Origin: Hyphochytrium catenoides
Taxonomy: Eukaryota > Protista > Hyphochytriomycota
DNA length: 53,867 nt
Assembly (NCBI GenBank): GCA_900088475.1
Contig: FLMG01003614.1
Location: 1 to 53,867, forward strand
Direction of reading: 5' to 3'
Shown here: positions 18,273 to 53,867 of the stretch, piece after piece
How the letters are laid out: each line of letters begins with the position of its first letter
Position numbering within the stretch: position 1 is the stretch's first letter
Program-made: the position numbers and the translations under genes
The notes under the pieces: generated by a model
Told to the model about the DNA's origin: nothing
What the model saw: the letters and a program-made list of their open reading frames with translations, nothing else
Database searches by the model: none

Positions 18273-18657
18273 NNNNNNNNNNNNNNNNNNNNNNNNNNNN
18301 NNNNNNNNNNNNNNNNNNNNNNNNNNNNNNNNNNTTGACAAACTGCCAACCTGCCAGAAAGAAACAGACAAATGGCGCCAAGCATCTAAGAACAAAAAGC
18401 GGAAGAGAGACACAGAGAGGGAGAGAGACTGCTTAGAGAGAGAGAGAGAAAGAGAGAAAGAGAGAGAGAGAGAGAAAAGAGCGCAAGGACTCGACAGACA
18501 GAGAAACAGCGGAACAACGGGTGACAATAGAAGAGCCATCATGAGGGGGAGATGACAACAAGGCGGTAAGAGACATCAAGGAACCAACGAATGAGATAGA
18601 GAACATAGGAAAGAAAGAAGGAAAGAGGAAGAAAGAGAAAAAGGAAGAGAGAGAGAG

Positions 18658-18690
<33 letters not shown>

Positions 18691-19507
18691 NNNNNNNNNN
18701 NNNNNNNNNNNNNNNNNNNNNNNNNNNNNNNNNNNNNNNNNNNNNNNNNNNNNNNNNNAGAGAGAGAGAGTGAGAGAGAGAGAGAATGACATGGGAGCAG
18801 AGAGGCAGGTAAGGGGGCGAAAGAGACGATGGAAGGGGAGGTTTGCTTCTCTGTCTTTTTATACTGCGTGAGAAACGGCGGTGGGACGGCACCAAGAAGC
18901 TCTCACTCACTAGGTGGGTCGGTCGATTGGAAGAGAGAGGAAAGGGAGAAGGTGCAGCAGCAGTGCGCGGTGGAGAGAGAGGAAGAGTAATTTAATAATA
19001 CAGAGAAAAAGAGACAGAGAGAGAGAGAGAAGTGTAACAGTCAGTCCACCCCAAGATTGCCGGAGTGTCTGTGTTTGGGAAAGAGAGAGAGTGAGAGAGA
19101 GAGACAGAGAGAGAGACCCATCTTTGTATAGAATATCTTAGAAAGAACTGTGAGGGAGGAATGGAGAAAGAAGCCAGCCTTGGGTTTGTGGCGTGCGTGC
19201 GTGTGTGTGAGAGAGAGAGAGAGAAAAAGAGAAAGAGATTGTCCAAGAGATGAGGGAAGAAAAGGCTCAGCTTACTACTTCTTTTTCTTCCACACGTCTC
19301 TCTCTCTCTCTCTCTGTTTCTGTTCCTCTCCAGCTGACAGGCGGACCAATCAGCCCCAAAGGCCTCTCTCTCCCTGCTGCTTGCTCCCTCGCTTCCTACC
19401 CAGATGCTTGGCGNNNNNNNNNNNNNNNNNNNNNNNNNNNNNNNNNNNNNNNNNNNNNNNNNNNNNNNNNNNNNNNNNNNNNNNNNNNNNNNNNNNNNNN
19501 NNNNNNN
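18273..19507. repeat. (GA)n/(CT)n low-complexity region containing three assembly gaps (18273-18334, 18691-18758, 19414-19507)
   Basis: N runs flanked by GA/CT dinucleotide tracts. Confidence 0.9.
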
Positions 19508-23613: not shown

Positions 23614-23686
23614 TCCCAGTTAGTCTAGGTGGTTAGGATAGCTGGCTTTCACCCAGCAGACCCGGGTTCGAGTCCCGGACTGGGAA
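23614..23686 (+). tRNA. trnE-UUC: tRNA-Glu (anticodon TTC)
   Basis: Acceptor stem TCCCAGT/ACTGGGA, anticodon arm GCTGG-CT-TTC-AC-CCAGC, T-loop GTTCGAG, followed by a T5 Pol III terminator at 23691. Confidence 0.97.
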
Positions 23687-41703: not shown

Positions 41704-42257
41704 TATCCATCTGCAGTTTCATGATCTGAATGATAACTAAATCTAAATCATGGTACGATTCTCTTCAGATAGATTGTGGGCGTTTTCTCCTTCAATCTTA
41801 TTCTCATGCGAGGAGCTAGCTTATGGTAGAGTAAATCAGGGTGTCGAGGCCAGCCACTTAAAAAAGAAGCTGACACTAGGCATTTAGTTTCGGTATTCCG
41901 GTGCTTTTATCATACTTTGGGGTATTTTCGGTTTTGAGGTGTTTTTGGTGAGACTCACTCTTCGGCCAATCGTTTGATGTCCGCGTGAGAAGCTAGCAGC
42001 TGATGAACCGCAGAGCTTCGTTATAGAGATAGGAAGTATTGAGCTTGCAGCTTCCATCCACAGCAGTCACTGCCCTGCTTTCTCTCCTTGATGCAGGCGC
42101 TACGCATCGTCAATAGAAGCGGAAGGTGTGTCATTCTTCGCTAGATAGTTCCAGCTGTGGCTCGCCGCAGAAATTACTTCGTAGTATTGCCATTGCTAAG
42201 GTCTACCTCTCTTTTATTAGCGATAGTCACATAGGTCCAGGGGAAATGGTCTTAACG

Positions 42258-44201
42258 ATGGCAGGTCGGACTCAGAAGCTCGCAAAGCAGATGTTGCAAT
42301 CGCCTACTGGTGAGAAGAAGGCCTGCGTCTTCTTTGGAAGCCCTACGGGATGTCGCAATGGCCAGACATGCCGTTTCCTACACAGCGCGCAGATAGTCGG
42401 CCCTGCTATTTCTACCCCTCAACTAGCAAAGCCACAGCCAAAAATTCCCGCCCCAGAGTCCGCTTCAGGACTCTTGGGAGACGCACCTCAACAGCAGGAG
42501 GTTACTGCGCCTGCAGCAGTATCGGAGTCACCTGTTGGCCCAAAACCAAAGAGAGCACGGACAAATGAGCGGGATGTCACTACCCTCAGAGATGACCGGG
42601 GGGTGATTGAGTGGGATGAGCTGATAAAGCGCACCAGAGCCCATCCCAAGTACGCGCTCGAGTACGCTTTCCCAGCATGTGATAGCCCAGCTGGAGAAGG
42701 CTGGATGGAGACAAAGCCCTGCGGAGACTGGTGCTTTGGGCTGCCTCACGTGCTGGCGATTGACTGCGAGATGTGCGTCGTGAAGAACATGAGTAAGTCG
42801 TCACCTTTTACCATGGACCACGATATGAAGCGATTGCTTGGCGTGATGATAGGGACAACATTGGATTTCAGCGTTGAGGAGCAGCTCTAGGTCTCCCACT
42901 GGTGTTCTCATGTTTTTTGAAGCGCTGAGTTGTACCCACTCTTCTTCTACTTCCCCCAGCTACTGAGAGACTAGCTTGTGGCCTCCGCACATGTTCTCAT
43001 GACTGACTTTCTTTTCTTTGCAGAGACTGGCGTTGAAGACAATCGAGCGTTGGTGCGGGTGACAGCAGTGGACGGAAACAACCCAGATAAGGTTCTTTTG
43101 AACGACCTTGTCCGACAGCCTGCCAATGAACATGAAAAGATTCTAGAAACAAAGGAGGAGATCCACGGCATCACTGCGGTGGACATTATGAACGCTTCCA
43201 TGACGTTCCGTCACGCACAAGCAGCATTCCTTCGGCTTGCTTGTGCTAACGCAGTCGTGGTCGGTCACTCCCTTCATGGAGATCTAAAATCTATGAAGAT
43301 TAAGCATACGAAGGTTGTAGACACGGCGTACCTCTACCGGTTAGTGATAGGAGATGGCAGCCCCGCTCTCAAGGACGTGGCGAAGGCCGTGCTTCAGCAG
43401 GAGATGCCTGAGCAGCACGACAGTTACCTAGATGCTAAGGTAACGTCACTCCAATCGAGTTCCCGCAGAGCTTCAGCTGACTTTGAGAACTTTAGGTTGC
43501 GATGCTAGCGGCTAACCACGAACTGAGGAATGGACCCTCCCAGCCTATTCATAGAGCCCATGCGGTGACAGATCTTTCAAAGCTCAGGCTCCATCGGATT
43601 CCTAAAAAGTACGTTGTGGCGGTGTGTGTCACAGTATCAGTTTACTTCTTATCCGCCCCAAGTTAGGCTTCTACTCTATCGTTTATGGGTCCCCGAGCTA
43701 TCCTTCTACTTCCCACGTGTAGATTTTCATCTGAGATGGCGTAAGGTTCTTTTATTAGATCGGAGTGATACATTCTCATGAGTGATAGCCATTCCATACT
43801 CTCTTGCCTCTCTTTTCGTTGATCTGAGCGGTATCGTGGTTCTTTAATACAGTACGACGCCAGAAGAGCTGCATCAGATCTTTGTGAGTCGAGCGCGAAT
43901 TGTTCCAGTCGCGGTAGAAAACATCCGCTGGAAGGACAACGTGAGAGGGGAGAAGCTTGGGTCCACTATTGTGGCTTTCCTCACGGTGGCCCATGCGGAG
44001 CTAGCTTTCTCAACAATCGAGGGGGTAGCTAACAAGGTAAGCTGTGCAGCCTTCGTATGCCTTGCGCGTGACCGAGCATTCACCATGTATGCTAATATTT
44101 CTTTCCGGCAGGACAACCATGGGCGGGATCAAAAGCAAGTGCTTTTAGCGGCTGACGGCAAAAGCAACCGCGGCTACTTCCATATGGTGAAGGTCTTATA
44201 G
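42258..44201 (+). CDS. CCCH zinc finger + DEDDh 3'-5' exoribonuclease (REX1/SDN-like), multi-exon
   Basis: C-x8-C-x5-C-x3-H (CVFFGSPTGCRNGQTCRFLH); ExoI AIDCEMC; ExoII VGHSLHGDL; VVDTA; ExoIII HDSYLDA; a possible RRM-like C-terminus. Confidence 0.85.
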
Positions 44202-46070: not shown

Positions 46071-49000
46071 TTAAATAATAATGCTTTTAGTCAAGGCTAT
46101 TCCCAATAATGGGCTGCTAAGTTCATATTTTTGGCCAGGAAATCTGAAGATTCTGTCAGTTTCAGAAGTTCCTGTCTGTCTTGCTGAGGACAGAGTGCCG
46201 CGCACCTCCTTCTCCGCTGCCGCAGATGCGCGTGAGGACTTACCTTCTGTCCTCATCGAAGGCCTTGAGGAGAGCTTGGACAGCCGTGAAAGCTGTTTGT
46301 GCTCTTTCATACTCGACCATTAGCTTCTCTGAGGTCTGGAGAAGCAGTTGGCACAATCTCTCTGCCTCCTCGCCAGCTGTTAGGCCTTCCAAACGGCGTG
46401 ATGGCTTTCCTGAGCATTGGATGGCCACATTGGCAGTCTGTTGGGCGGAAGTCAACTGTTCTTGTAAATCTTGAAGAATAGTGTAGAACTGGCTTAGACT
46501 GTTTCTTCCTCTGACATCCTCCGCATCAGCCTGAGTGATAATATTGTGCAAAGCATGAATGACATCCGCCCGCTTCTCTATGACTGCCTCACTCACTGCC
46601 ATCGTCATGCCTAGGTCTTCATCTTCCTCTACATGTGGCTTCCGCGCCAGGTTAGTGGCGATCTTTTGTTGAGATGCAGCGTGGGGGGCTTCCGCCCCCA
46701 TCTGCTCGTCAACACTTCCCGTTGCAGCTGCTTGTTGCTGCAACAGGGCCTCTCGGCGGCTTGAAGCCGCTCTGAACTCATCTTCAGCGACCTTCTTTCT
46801 CATGATTAAGGTCTCCAATGCACGGGTGCTAGCGGCAGCACTTACTTGGCACTCCAGACGAAGCTTCGCTACATTTTCTGACACTGTGGTGCATTTTTCC
46901 AAAAGTCTCCCGCAGCGTTGTCCGCACTTTCGCCGCTGCTCACGCTTTTCCATCACTACGCGCCGCAAGAACCGACTTGAAACGTGAATAGCCCAAATCT
47001 CTACTGTTTGCGGCTGGGAAATGATCCGCAATAGTGAAGGGAATTTCCATAGAGTGACAGACGTACCATAGGAGGATGTGAAGAGGTATGCGCTCCACTC
47101 CTCTCGGGCAGAAGCGACAGAAGTAATTGCCGCTCGAGAGTCAGCTTGCTTCTTCTTTGTCTGTGAGAGCTTCAGTGGCTTGCACCATTGAAGACTGGTT
47201 ACGTGTTCGTTGTGCGCAGTCAGAACCTCATGCCGTTTCTCCATGTAATGACAATCCCAGAGCTTGACAGAACCATCATCTCCCCCGGACAAGAGAAGCG
47301 GGTACTCCAAAGCGCCCTTGAGGCTTTCTAAGTCATGCTTGAAAGATGTTAAACGGGATACCCTCCCTATGTGAGCCTCACGGAAGCGGTGCAAGAGCCT
47401 ATAAGAGAGTTTCGAGCCCCATTCTGTCGTCTCAGTACGGTGGGGCTGAGGCGGCCCCGGGCCGCGAAAGCGACATTCACGCTCATCTATTACCGAGTAG
47501 AGAATAATGTCTGAACTTCTGGGTGTTGACTGCTGTGAAACTGCGAGGCTGAGCCTTTTCCGGAAGCCATCATACAGAGGTGATAGGCAAGCTGAAGGGG
47601 AATGCAAAGTAATCGTAAGGAGGCGCTGGAGAGTGCAAGGGCCATAGGCTGGGCAACTGACGGTATAGATGCCCACAAGATGCTGCTTTTCGGTTAAAGA
47701 GAGGAAGAGAAGAGGCGGCAAGTGGTCAATTGGGTCCAGGGACTTGCATGCTTCAACCCGACACTGCAAATCCACCGCCAGACGGAGGCGTAGCGACTTT
47801 AACGTCAAGCCGCCTACAGTCTGGACTATCCGACCGTCCCTCGTCTCGATCCTCTCCTTGCGGCAGGACTCCCACTTCCACATCCGCAACTGGCCACCCC
47901 CGCTGCAAGCTACCAAGAAGCTCCCTCTCGTATACCCTGGTAGGATCGTTGCACTTAGCTTCCCTAGTAACTTGAAGGTTAGACTCGTTGTAACGTTCTC
48001 GACCGCACCTACACCACCTACAGCTTGTATGCCGTAGTGCTTGACAAGAGAGTAACTGGTTTTACCGAACTGCTCCTCGACCTGTAAGTCATAGCAGGAC
48101 AAAACGCCGTCTCCATAGCCTACAATCAATACAGAATCCAGCCAGAAGCACGATGTAGGTACCGCTCTGGCCCGCTTGCCATCGTTTACTCCTGAAGGTT
48201 TGGAATTGCAGACCTTAGCAGGGAGGGATTCCGGGGCATTGGCAAGAGAAGGCTCTTTGTCTTCGGTGGAGGCGTGTGCAAGCCTAGAAGACTTTTCAAT
48301 GCTCCAGACCTCCACGCCACGAGAAGTGCAAAGGCTAAGATACGTTCCTAAAGGGCAAACCGCGCCGCAAAGGACTTTGCGTGATGTTTGGAAAGATGCC
48401 AGGCTTGTCATCTGTGGTTTGTCTGTGCCAGATGAGGAGATTCAGAGTGGCATAAGAGAGAGATACTACTCCTACTCAGAGCTAACAGTGCAGAGTTCAT
48501 AAAGGAAGCTGGCCAGAAATGAGAACTTGGAAGAAATTGATCACAGCCCATAAAGGGAACTGGGGAAACCCTCAGCCGTGCGGGCAAGCAGATAAAGAGG
48601 AGATGAGAATTGTTGGGCTTCTTGTCAATGCAATGCTGCTTGTTTGAGGGCCAGTAGCTCGACAGCCATATCTTTTTGTATCTACTTACATAGTTCGATC
48701 TTGGCAGGAGAGCTGCTTACTTTCCCATTGCTATTCTCTAAGACGCACTGGTATACTCCAGCTTGTCTGGGCTCTAGCCTCTTGATCAAAAGATGACTTG
48801 ACGAGCGCTTAGAGACCGAAAGTACAGTTCGCCCGTCTTGAATCCATTGGAACCTTGCTACCCGCTTGCCGCCGCACCATAAACCGACGCGCTCTCCGTA
48901 CCAGCAGAGCCGTGCTTGAGGGTGTATCCTGACTTCGGGAAGAAGAGTGCGAACTGCTTTCCAAAGAGGAGTAGATGTTAGGCTCTTGTCAAGAGTTTTG

Positions 49001-49970
49001 CAGACTTCAGGAACGACGAGGCTATACCGGCTCCTGAGACGACTTGGGGTTGACTCGCTACGTGCTGGATTTGGGCCTCTTTTTTCCCCTGATTATCCAA
49101 AGCATCTATCCTTTCCTTCAGGTTGGCGGCACTATCAGCCTTAACAGAGCGAAGCGCTGCCAGCATCTCGGCTACGAAGGAATAAAAGATGGAATGAGCT
49201 TCGCCTTCACCCCAGAGCGCTTTCCGTAGCACGAACCTGTAACGGACGGAGCTTTTCGGCATAAAACGAGGTGGATGCTACGAAAGCTCCAAGCTGTAGT
49301 TATGTCCAGAGGCACAAAAGTGCAGGCGTACTCCAAGCACTCACGGAGACCTAGCGTTTAGCAATGAGACAATACTCTTGGGATCGGACATCCAAGAAAG
49401 AACGTACCCGCAATCGAGTCATCAAAGCCAAACCTAGCGCCGATGGGCTGCAAGGCGTCAACCATTAGCGGCATAACCTTCTGTACAGACATGTCAAAGG
49501 GCGGTCGAGGCTTAGCGTTATCGAGATAGTAGGAGTCATACCTGGAGGAGTTGCTCCGGTGAACTGCCAGCTAAGCCACCAGGAATGAATGAATCAGTTT
49601 GGACTCGACTAAGACTCTATGCCAATAGCATATTTTACCTTTCTCTGTCTCTTCCTCAATCGTTTGGCTAAGTGGACCATGCAAAACTGCTCCTTGCATC
49701 TCTTTGAGCATATCTGGAGAGTGATTTGCCATACGTTAAGAGCGCACAAGAGTTTGGGACGGGTAGGGAAATCATCTCAGAGTTTCTATACCTTGGACTT
49801 GGTTGAGAGTCAAAGTGACCATCTTGTCTCAGGCGACCAAGCTTCTCTTGCTTGTTAGGTAACGCTCCCTGCCACTTGTGGGCCGTTGTCTTAAGCTTTC
49901 CTACCTCGGATAGTGCTACTTGGGACCTCTCAACGATGCTCCATCTCTCCTCGACTGCTCCAATCTGCAA
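46071..49970 (-). CDS. Multidomain protein: unknown N-terminus + Ig I-set-like domain + WD40 propeller + coiled coil
   Basis: Exon 48690-48953 encodes an Ig-like domain and splices in frame to the large WD40 exon starting at 48422 (LLSGGDDGSVKLWD, AHNEHVTSLQW, SVTLWK). A terminal intron follows FDEDR and leads to a stop at 46071. The true start lies at or upstream of about 49970 and is unresolved. Confidence 0.7.
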
Positions 49971-50334
49971 TGATCAGAGTTATCGATGATGAGTGGCAGC
50001 TTCTGTATGCCGCCGCCGACGGCAGCACTTGACAACATGCCATAAACAGCACCTTTCCCTTCCCCTAGCTAGTTCTATCTGTCGACCTACTGCACCATGC
50101 TTCTCATTCTCTTCTGAAGCTCACTAGCTAGATCTCTGGCGCTAAACAAGGCCTTGTGGCAGGAGCCCAAGGCTGAACACTGCTTGACCTGGACCTCATC
50201 ATCCTTCTAGCCATCTTCGCTCTCTGGTCGAGTCGAGTCCGTCCTCCGCTGACACATCAAGCCATGACCTTTGAGTTGGGACAAACGACCTGTGCTATAT
50301 TACCTACTAATCACCATCGGATTCCAACAACACA

Positions 50335-50406
50335 TCCTCGTTAGTATAGTGGTTAGTATACCCGCCTGTCACGCGGGTGACCCGGGTTCAATTCCCGGAC
50401 GGGGAG
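50335..50406 (+). tRNA. trnD-GUC: tRNA-Asp (anticodon GTC)
   Basis: Acceptor stem TCCTCGT/ACGGGGA, anticodon arm CCCGC-CT-GTC-AC-GCGGG, T-loop GTTCAAT, oligo-T terminator downstream. Confidence 0.97.
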
Positions 50407-51757: not shown

Positions 51758-53245
51758 CTACGTCTTCCAGAGCTTGTTCAGCATGTGGATGCAAGCTTGA
51801 TTGTCCGTCACCCACATCACAAACTTCGCAACTTGCTTCGGGGTCAAAATTTCCTGCAATACGTCCATTTGCATCTGGAGTAGCTGGTTCTTCTCTTCTA
51901 TTGACTTTCTCAGCTCTTTAGCCAGGTGCATTGTGTCTCCAATCTTACTACTCAGCCGCCTAAAGTCGTCTCTCATTTGAAGAATCCTCTCCTTCTGCTG
52001 CGGAGTGACGTCCAGATCATGATTCAGAATTTTCCACAGGCTTCCATCTCCCTCTTCATCTTCACTATTCGAAGCCACGTCTCTGTAAAAGTCATCGTCC
52101 TGTTGCAAGGTCCATATGGTCATCTTCGAAACCTGAGTGGGTACTAACAGCTTCTGGAGCCGATCCAACTGGTGCATTGTGGACTGAGTGCGATCTCGAC
52201 CATAGTCAGCGTACCGTGCTGTGTATTGCGCCATACAGTGCCGGATATCTTCCGCGCTTCCATTATGCACCAAATCACGGAGAATGTCTGTAAACTTGTT
52301 TCTCTCTTTGTCCTCCTTGGATCGAACTTCTTTCCCTGACCGCAACTTTAGACGCAGGTCTGAATTCTCTTCTTCTAGCTGCTGAAGGCGAGCTTGAAGT
52401 TGGGCAATGTGCTCCTTCTTCCTTCTCCGACACTCTCGAGCGGACTCTCTGTTTTTCTCTTGCCGTTTCCTTTTTAAATGCTTAGTTGCCCGTCCGTTAC
52501 TATTGCCCGATGTCTCCTCAGCCACATTGGCCCCATGTCCCTGTGTGGCAGTTAAGGCAGGGCTTGGGGCTGCTTGCGGTGTAGGTGGGTGGAGAATCGG
52601 GGTAGGATGGAGGTTAAACTGGGGCGACAGTAAGCCAGGAGCTACCCAGCGATAGCCTGGAACAGAGTAGGGTGGAGCAGGCATGATAGGTGGGGGCCCT
52701 GAGGTAGGTGTAAGGGGTAGAGAGGGCTGCAGGGGAGGCTTATTGCCATTATTCTGTCTATCCGTGGAGGATGAAGAAGAGCGGGACGACCTTTTCGTAG
52801 CTTTGCTGTTCTTCTTTGAGGTTGCCTTTGCTGGCGCTTTGGCACCACTTTGCGCATTGCTCAATTCTGGCGGTACCACCGTAGATCCGATTCCGGTCTC
52901 TGCAACATCCTTAGGCAACGATTCCTTCTCCCCTTGCGTCCCTGAATGGGCCGCCTCCGGTATTGGTCTGGACTCAGTGGTCACGTTGCGTTTTTGGCTA
53001 GATTGCACTATCGTGTCCAAATCCCCAGCCTGGGGAGCAAGCTCAGGGGTATCCTCCACCATGGAAGTGCTTAAGGCCTCTAAGCTTGGAGTAGCAAGAT
53101 CAGTAAAGCCGTCGAGACCGTGGTCAAGGTGCAATGTGGCGGCGTGAATATCAAGAGGCCCGCTGCCAGGACTCCCATGACTACGACCGTGATCCCTCAA
53201 AAGCCATTGCAGTATCTCCTCGGGCTCATCCTGCGTGCGAGCCAT
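51758..53245 (-). CDS. bZIP transcription factor with C-terminal DOG1/TGA-like helical domain
   Basis: Basic region KRQEKNRESARECRRRKK with a leucine zipper, then LQEILTPKQVAKFVMWV. Single exon; start taken at ATG 53245 (MARTQDE). Confidence 0.88.
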   Translation of the reverse strand: MARTQDEPEEILQWLLRDHGRSHGSPGSGPLDIHAATLHLDHGLDGFTDLATPSLEALSTSMVEDTPELAPQAGDLDTIVQSSQKRNVTTESRPIPEAAHSGTQGEKESLPKDVAETGIGSTVVPPELSNAQSGAKAPAKATSKKNSKATKRSSRSSSSSTDRQNNGNKPPLQPSLPLTPTSGPPPIMPAPPYSVPGYRWVAPGLLSPQFNLHPTPILHPPTPQAAPSPALTATQGHGANVAEETSGNSNGRATKHLKRKRQEKNRESARECRRRKKEHIAQLQARLQQLEEENSDLRLKLRSGKEVRSKEDKERNKFTDILRDLVHNGSAEDIRHCMAQYTARYADYGRDRTQSTMHQLDRLQKLLVPTQVSKMTIWTLQQDDDFYRDVASNSEDEEGDGSLWKILNHDLDVTPQQKERILQMRDDFRRLSSKIGDTMHLAKELRKSIEEKNQLLQMQMDVLQEILTPKQVAKFVMWVTDNQACIHMLNKLWKT

Positions 53246-53867
53246 GGGCGCGTTCACCACTTTCGTGCCACTGATGTAGGTTGTGAGAAGAACAACCGAC
53301 CGAGGCGACGGGGGCAAATGGCCCCAAGCAGAAGCAAACGTTGCAGGAATCGATCTCTCACGTCGCAGTTTGGCACATATTTTTCAGATGTAGCAACACC
53401 TCTTGGAAGGCAACTTATGACAGAACCCGTAGCAAGACTTCTTTACACCTATAATAGGAAGCCTCAAGCTGGGATCACCGTCATCCTCAACCGACTCATG
53501 ACAAGAAGGCCAATGCACGAGAAAAGCCAATGTCGTTTGACACAATAGCGGCGCCGTCTGTCTCTTTCTAATTCAAGTAAGAACAGCTTCTTCTACAACT
53601 GCAAATTGCGGATGAATTACGGTCTGCGAGACCAGACAATGAAAGACGGAAAGACTCAGGGACCCAACCTCAACAACACGCCCTAAATAATTGGTCTAAC
53701 AGACTTCTTGCAAGGAATTACGGATAGAGTGAAGCCTGTTGACACTTATTTTCTCTAGAGCTGTGACTCATCCAGAATACAGTGTTCCATACGTAAATTA
53801 TTTGGGGTCAACCTCACAACCGTGAAAAATCGACTTTCGATGGCAATTTTGACGCCACGTAAGTGAT

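Follow-up and report, generated by a model that had tools for sequence, protein, structure and literature searches.

In textbooks, classical domains of the immunoglobulin superfamily (IgSF) stand for the cell-surface biology of animals, and many of the immunoglobulin (Ig) domains of animals lie on phase 1-1 exons. The contactins, DCC, Robo, sidekick and titin (Pfam PF13895, PF13927 and PF07679) carry domains with a conserved cysteine, a W-x-x-D-G block, an L-x-I motif in the E strand and a G-x-Y-x-C-x-x-x-N-x-x-G block, and the same pattern is found in a stretch of 264 nt (48690..48953, minus strand) of contig FLMG01003614.1 of Hyphochytrium catenoides, a sequence of 53,867 nucleotides that is called here the window. 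A preliminary description of the window, made from its letters, had taken this stretch as an exon of a non-animal eukaryote, correctly in that the genome is that of a stramenopile, and had joined it to a downstream frame with WD40 repeats. In comparison with contactins, DCC, Robo, sidekick and titin, the protein predicted here has a single Ig domain with about 35% per-domain similarity, a stramenopile host and probable WD40/helical partners, and no signal peptide, transmembrane (TM) or glycosylphosphatidylinositol (GPI) context was found in its gene. Another analogy may be offered by titin, obscurin, myosin-binding protein C and palladin, where Ig modules without secretion signals are likewise found together with repeat and helical modules; there is no orthology to these proteins, however, neither a kinase nor Fn3 or tandem Ig domains accompany the Ig domain of the window gene, and the likeness would be one of function. 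Our reading, to which we give a rough probability of 0.6, is that the Ig exon and the WD40/helical frame make up one spliced gene for a cytosolic scaffold, with splicing, propeller, coiled coil, location and function all predicted from the DNA sequence.

Outside animals, the domain belongs to a known superfamily for which there is already a precedent in Acanthamoeba castellanii, where I-set-like Ig proteins were reported in what the authors called a "remarkable" finding (PMC4053784). The Acanthamoeba proteins were assigned to the adhesion type, and TM domains were weakly predicted in them (PMC4053784), whereas the context of the window gene looks cytosolic, a comparison made by description only. 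Ig-like (I-set) domains are also found on tail and decoration proteins of phages. The Ig-like tail/decoration proteins 9ncf_S and 9c2d_S align with the Ig exon over its full length (residues 4-85/86), and an Escherichia coli phage protein annotated as 'immunoglobulin I-set domain protein' is 30-35% identical to it (tblastn). These matches are marginal (E 3e-4; PHROG tail-protein E 0.004-0.01), and the locus has no phage gene context, the Ig exon lying in a eukaryotic gene where it is putatively spliced; the tblastn and PHROG matches are too weak to place the origin of the domain in phages or bacteria.

Profile searches place the exon within the classical IgSF. Against Pfam it scores 38.9 bits with Ig_2 (E 1e-9; gathering cut-off 27), 32.0 bits with Ig_3 (cut-off 30), 26.3 bits with I-set (cut-off 23.7) and 25.2 bits with ig (cut-off 21.8), so that the three profiles which the preliminary description had proposed for such a check (I-set, Ig_2 and Ig_3) all exceed their curated thresholds and the match is well outside what chance would give. 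In a six-frame Ig_2 scan of the whole genome (61.0-Mb assembly, 4759 contigs, the window being contig C1791) the exon was the top match, with E 9.5e-8. Its 87 in-frame codons (48951..48691) keep the core residues of the fold, namely Cys26 in the B strand, Trp36 in the C strand and Tyr67-x-Cys69 in the F strand, all of which align with contactin positions. Sequence matches in the PDB comprise Ig domains of contactins, DCC, titin (3b43), sidekick, Dscam and Robo, with the W-x-x-(D/N)-G and (D/A)-G-x-Y-x-C-x-x-x-N-x-x-G blocks aligned between them and the exon, and the ESM Atlas relates it at 0.96 to Ig_3/I-set clusters. One Ig domain is detected at the locus by Pfam, and the genome has no paralogue of the exon.

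The I-set hallmarks listed in the first account hold as those of a classical Ig domain (four Pfam families, Cys-Trp-Tyr-x-Cys), and it is the I-set label that fails. Assignment to that subtype was taken to require I-set as the top-scoring Ig profile and a longer C'-D region, with a Cys-Cys spacing of about 50 or more; in the exon, Ig_2 scores best, exceeding I-set by 12.6 bits, and the spacing is 43. The predicted product is thus a classical IgSF domain of a short C2/I-set-like type rather than a textbook I-set. A Foldseek search with a single-sequence AlphaFold2 model of low confidence gave no meaningful match, only noise.

The exon is bracketed by splice signals on both sides. At its 5' end, tandem AG acceptors (AAGCAG, with GCAG at 48957-48954) finish at 48954, directly upstream of the first exon nucleotide, and a branch-like CCTAAC motif lies at 48982-48977, 23 nt ahead of the acceptor; at its 3' end an exact GTAAGT donor (48689-48684) abuts the exon. 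This donor is of the same form as those of the two introns that served as references, whose positions are fixed by domain continuity and which begin with GTAAG followed by T or G: one in a neighbouring exonuclease-like gene (42126-43508), the other within a split Ig domain on another contig, C1094. Splicing of the exon would create the junction codons GTT (V) at the 5' end and TAC (Y) at the 3' end. The G+C content is 52% in the Ig exon, 52-53% in the flanking exons and 46% in the two putative introns. In these respects the first account was accurate: the coordinates, the length, the minus strand and phase 1 at both ends were as it had them, its peptide matches the 87-codon translation, with two leading residues in front, and the signals GTATAG, CCTAAC, GCAG and GTAAGT are where it had seen them. 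It was also right that the exon is missing from the track of open reading frames (ORFs). The exon lies in an open frame of 136 codons that has no ATG, nor any ATG, GTG or TTG early enough for the ORF listing; it is for lack of an early start codon that the track omits it, and the absence of an ATG means that the stretch could be translated only as a spliced exon. By these signals, the 264-nt stretch is predicted to be an internal coding exon of a stramenopile nuclear gene, with boundaries known as sequence signals.

It could be argued that such a stretch is a silent relic or a pseudo-exon, be it what is left of a transferred fragment after decay or an exon that is skipped, and that no mature protein contains it. 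The lack of a start codon of its own, the weakness of the donor upstream and the failure to find an identical or near-identical protein in the protein collection, or a paralogue, would all fit such a relic. Decay, on the other hand, has left no mark on it: the 87-codon frame is intact with all fold-defining residues kept, the splice signals at the two ends are matched in phase, and G+C content and codon score are like those of the neighbouring exons. The blank protein search is uninformative here; a word-index search with the 136-codon frame returned nothing from a collection that lacks even the 723-residue ORF of the same locus. We therefore regard a relic as quite improbable.

The frame to which the Ig exon would be joined is a large exon (46240..48422, minus strand), which contains a 733-codon open frame (48441-46243) with an ATG at 48411, from which an ORF of 723 residues runs to the stop at 46242-46240. 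A canonical WD40 repeat occupies ORF residues 371-411 (47179..47301, minus strand) and is the sole repeat over the Pfam cut-off, scoring 32.4 bits as a segment alone against a cut-off of 27, and 22 bits in the scan of the whole ORF; the same residues match idealised WD40 repeats in the PDB (6y7o). Around it, a more extended WD40-like region is recognisable over residues ~88-483 (46963..48150, minus strand), where a motif scan finds WD-type strand signatures at 98, 169, 376 and 446. Two-blade alignments from the PDB bring residues 372-483 together with Notchless and FBXW11, and residues 277-394 with YTM1. The number of WD40-like repeats in the large frame is hence two to four at the least, and it is plausible that they form a complete propeller. 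The region that follows, ORF residues 500-723 (46243..46914, minus strand), has no Pfam family and is rich in helix formers, with a fraction of 0.46-0.65 and Pro+Gly of at most 0.08 per 50-residue block; from this composition, the tail may be a coiled coil. Of the propeller and coiled coil first proposed, what has been found is a WD40 repeat over the cut-off and a helix-rich tail, and the full propeller and the coiled coil remain predictions.

The arrangement of an N-terminal WD40 region followed by a C-terminal helical one is shared with CFAP43/44/57, POC1, NEDD1 and coronin, none of which, to our knowledge, carries an Ig domain. In the ESM Atlas, the weak look-alikes of the WD40/helical protein include a CFAP57 cluster (0.91). 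Orthology to proteins of the CFAP43/44/57 type over the propeller region was not seen in an exhaustive HMMER search with residues 1-500 against 1.84 billion representatives, which returned generic single WD40-repeat matches only, none of them spanning the query: the top match (E 3e-30) is a sum over 14 copies of one repeat, and in nearly all of the 150 matches listed the best stretch was residues 371-411. Word-index searches with the whole ORF and with the C-terminal region found no relatives either, and the genome holds no paralogue. The WD40/helical protein is an orphan in the databases searched.

Between the Ig exon and this large exon lies a putative intron of 267 nt (48423..48689, minus strand), hereafter intron 2, with its GTAAGT donor at 48689-48684 and a CAG acceptor at 48425-48423; the mean intron length of the genome is 208 bp (PMC5795050). 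After the CACAG that ends at 48423, the next exon would begin with ACAAACCACAGATG at 48422, which is the first in-phase exon start downstream of the Ig exon that gives an open frame. The last 40 nt of intron 2 are 70% pyrimidine. Both partners are in phase 1 and the junction codon is TAC, so the in-frame compatibility claimed at the outset for the two frames is borne out. The Ig exon itself would call for either a stop or a further exon to follow it. On these grounds, which are those of splice signals and frame compatibility, it is fairly probable that the Ig exon and the WD40 frame belong to one gene, with GTAAGT joined to the 48423 acceptor. Intron 2 is also spanned, in a different reading frame, by 102 open codons (48411-48716, minus strand) that end where the WD40 frame has its ATG; this frame has a codon score of about 0, matches no family, and is probably due to chance.

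Several observations weigh against the reading as a whole, and the first of them concern this join. A TAG at 48684-48686 is in frame only two codons inside intron 2, so that the Ig exon could be terminal, and the ATG at 48411 sits four codons past the proposed acceptor, so that the WD40 frame could be an independent gene. Further upstream, the GTATAG donor that would feed the Ig exon is weak, departing at +4/+5 from the GTAAG of the homology-supported introns, and two other phase-1 donors, G/GTACGT (49407) and G/GTTCGT (49236), could serve instead, which leaves the N-terminus ambiguous; because of this ambiguity of the 5' exon, the absence of a signal peptide is provisional. As to the domains, just one WD40 repeat exceeds the Pfam threshold, and the single-sequence AlphaFold2 models, built with no alignment, are of low confidence both for the WD40 part (predicted local distance difference test, pLDDT, of 33.7) and for the Ig exon, which is all-beta with seven strands at a mean pLDDT of 54.8. 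Moreover, no orthologue was found by which conservation of the architecture could be judged.

The stop and the ATG, taken together, are the core of a different explanation, in which two genes stand side by side: a small Ig protein, its domain at the C-terminus, that ends at the TAG of 48686-48684 (...IELCK-stop), and a separate WD40/helical gene starting from the ATG at 48411, with the 267 nt between them acting as 3' untranslated region and promoter. An in-phase AG would be expected by our own estimate in about half of cases within the 30 open nt upstream of such an ATG, and short spacers do occur here, as a gene on the same strand downstream starts ~490 nt after the WD40 stop. Still, a spacer of 267 nt would be about half of the only other tandem spacer measured, the pyrimidine-rich tract and the CAG stand directly at the in-phase acceptor, and the sequence GTAAGT, which occurs 13 times on both strands of the window (2 x 53.9 kb), has a chance expectation well under 1% of falling right at the end of the domain. 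Two separate genes are therefore unlikely, a single spliced gene being the more probable.

In such a gene the order would be a short N-terminal segment, the Ig domain, the WD40-like propeller region and the helix-rich tail, about 900 residues in all. No signal-like or TM-like segment is present in any candidate exon, the highest 19-residue hydropathy being 1.28, and the features of animal cell-surface IgSF proteins (signal peptide plus TM or GPI anchor, tandem Ig/Fn3 arrays) were not found at the locus, which has a single Ig domain and no segment above this value in any candidate exon. The claim that the protein lacks signal peptide and TM helix thus stands for every candidate exon and is insecure for a first exon that is itself ambiguous. 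Given that no signal or membrane segment is found, and that the other Ig loci of the genome sit with cytosolic modules, a scaffold in the cytosol is the most likely identity of the protein. The helical tail may oligomerise or anchor it, and propeller and Ig module could each offer a protein-binding surface, as do the intracellular I-set domains of titin, obscurin, myosin-binding protein C and palladin. A role in the cytoskeleton or the flagellar apparatus is a guess by analogy.

The ambiguous 5' end also leaves room for the opposite view, that a signal peptide is encoded by the true first exon and the Ig domain, with or without the propeller, lies outside the cell, in a protein of the animal adhesion type or of a semaphorin-like propeller-Ig type. 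Both cysteines of the canonical disulfide are kept, and the top PDB matches are cell-surface molecules, as would be expected for such a protein. But the candidate upstream exons are not signal-like, no TM segment appears anywhere, and the other classical Ig domains of the genome sit with IQ, C2 and MORN modules. Proteins with WD40 repeats and long helical tails are typically cytosolic, and cytosolic I-set domains often retain the canonical cysteines. A secreted or surface protein is for these reasons very improbable.

A genome-wide view helps to place the locus, as classical Ig profiles match at only three loci: this window and two others. On contig C1094 (1797-4700, plus strand), one gene has exons that resemble IQ motifs and coiled coil and, at its end, two classical Ig domains, of which the first is without the B-strand Cys and the second scores 32.6 bits with Ig_2 and is 37% identical over 49 residues to the Ig exon of the window. 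An intron of ~420 nt (GTAAGG...TTCAG) interrupts this second domain between strands B and C, and the frame ends shortly afterwards. On contig C96 (9000-18999, plus strand), an intron-poor open frame of 4102 codons carries LRR, IQ, two or three Ig_3/I-set-like domains, C2 and MORN. Both loci share with the window gene the Ig_2/I-set/Ig_3 matches and the modules of cytosolic type, and differ from it in architecture, and they are not recent paralogues; in the case of C1094, an intron splits the Ig domain, whereas in the window gene putative introns bracket it. That predicted Ig domains sit with such modules at both loci supports the idea of an intracellular Ig module. With three loci in the genome, the domain is no one-off, and a simple story of recent transfer is weakened. 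The rarity of Ig domains in eukaryotes other than animals, as initially asserted, needs to be softened accordingly, given these two further loci and the I-set proteins of Acanthamoeba (PMC4053784).

The same data bear on whether the exon is native. By its sequence features the domain most resembles animal IgSF domains, and animal contamination or a chimeric assembly might have put an animal Ig exon in the contig. Yet the locus is contiguous, with the nearest runs of N 29 kb away, its G+C content is native, and the short putative introns on either side have CTRAY-like branch motifs such as are found in the rest of the window. No close animal match was found: the word-index search with the 136-codon frame was blank, the nearest matches of the Ig exon, whether animal, phage or its own relative on C1094, are all at 30-40% identity, and the best identity outside the genome is 30-37%. 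The two further Ig loci are on other contigs of the same genome, and the published contamination screen of the Hyphochytrium catenoides assembly found no non-eukaryote-like scaffolds in this size class (PMC5795050). Contamination is therefore extremely improbable. The N runs mentioned are three in number, at 18273-19507, in a region of lower G+C content (44%) with CT-rich simple sequence.

As for novelty, we found no paper on an I-set + WD40 architecture, or on I-set domains in oomycetes or stramenopiles, and the statement that no described protein joins Ig and WD40 agrees with what the literature and the protein searches returned. The putative combination of an Ig domain with WD40 repeats has no counterpart found in papers or protein searches. 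Well-supported cases of Ig domains in distant eukaryotes bear on the time of origin of the domain and on its spread by exon shuffling or transfer, and a cytosolic context and a cleanly bracketed symmetric exon make such cases especially telling. Here, three loci in one stramenopile genome are predicted to carry a classical Ig domain, and the domain itself is solid at the level of sequence; exon shuffling would fit the symmetric phase 1-1 exon but is not proven by it. More tentatively, and as a possibility that we do not favour, Hyphochytrium and perhaps other stramenopiles may employ classical Cys-Trp-Cys Ig modules inside the cell, as parts of three or more unrelated cytosolic proteins (Ig-WD40-helical tail; IQ-coiled coil-Ig-Ig; LRR-IQ-Ig-C2-MORN). 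In that event the 'animal' IgSF domain would either be older than animals, as a module of the cytoskeleton or of scaffolds, or have been acquired and spread by exon shuffling far from animals, and the phase 1-1 exon would be a direct trace of that history.

The 5' end of the gene admits more than one model. In the first (model A), a putative intron of 74 nt (48954..49027, minus strand) runs from the donor G/GTATAG at 49028/49027, through the branch-like CCTAAC, to the AAGCAG acceptors, and the candidate first coding exon (49028..49262, minus strand) starts at an ATG at 49262 and comprises 78 codons in a 99-codon open frame. This exon has the top codon-usage score of the candidates (+0.14 bit/codon); it has no Pfam match, is unique in the genome, and with a maximum hydropathy of 1.07 is not signal-peptide-like. 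The alternative upstream exons of models B and D (49616-49543, 49480-49408 and 49350-49237, minus strand), whose codon scores are near zero, are mutually exclusive with model A; the donor at 49407 closes a chain of small frame-compatible exons that goes up to 49616 or further. None of the donors at 49027, 49236 and 49407 is strong beyond +1, +2 and partly +5. Long ORFs from the window and from C96 served to train the codon-usage log-odds, and real exons score just ~0.03-0.14 bit/codon on this scale, too weak to rank the upstream exon models. When splice-site matrices were learned from ORF pairs by unsupervised expectation-maximization, the procedure settled on CT-rich low complexity and not on splice signals, and its output was discarded. 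A micro-exon of 6 nt using a strong GTGAGT at 49344 was judged implausible and rejected.

Further upstream, at 49671-49973 (minus strand), 101 codons are open but include no ATG, and a donor-like site CCAAG/GTATAG near 49790 is phase-compatible with the small exons downstream; this frame could represent 5' exons of the Ig gene or belong to another gene. The Ig gene is bounded on this side by a tRNA-Asp(GTC) at 50335-50406 (plus strand), that is, on the opposite strand and ~1 kb upstream, and a tRNA-Glu(TTC) is found elsewhere in the window (23614-23686, plus strand). Beyond, at 51758-53317 on the same strand as the Ig gene, a separate gene is represented by an ORF of 519 residues with a bZIP domain (bZIP_1, E 1.9e-10). 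On the other side of the locus, the exonuclease-like gene that provided one of the reference introns (plus strand) has a hint of a CCCH zinc finger, and its intron, ATGA/GTAAGT...CTGAC...TTTGCAG/AG, restores the conserved DCEM...LVRV spacing.

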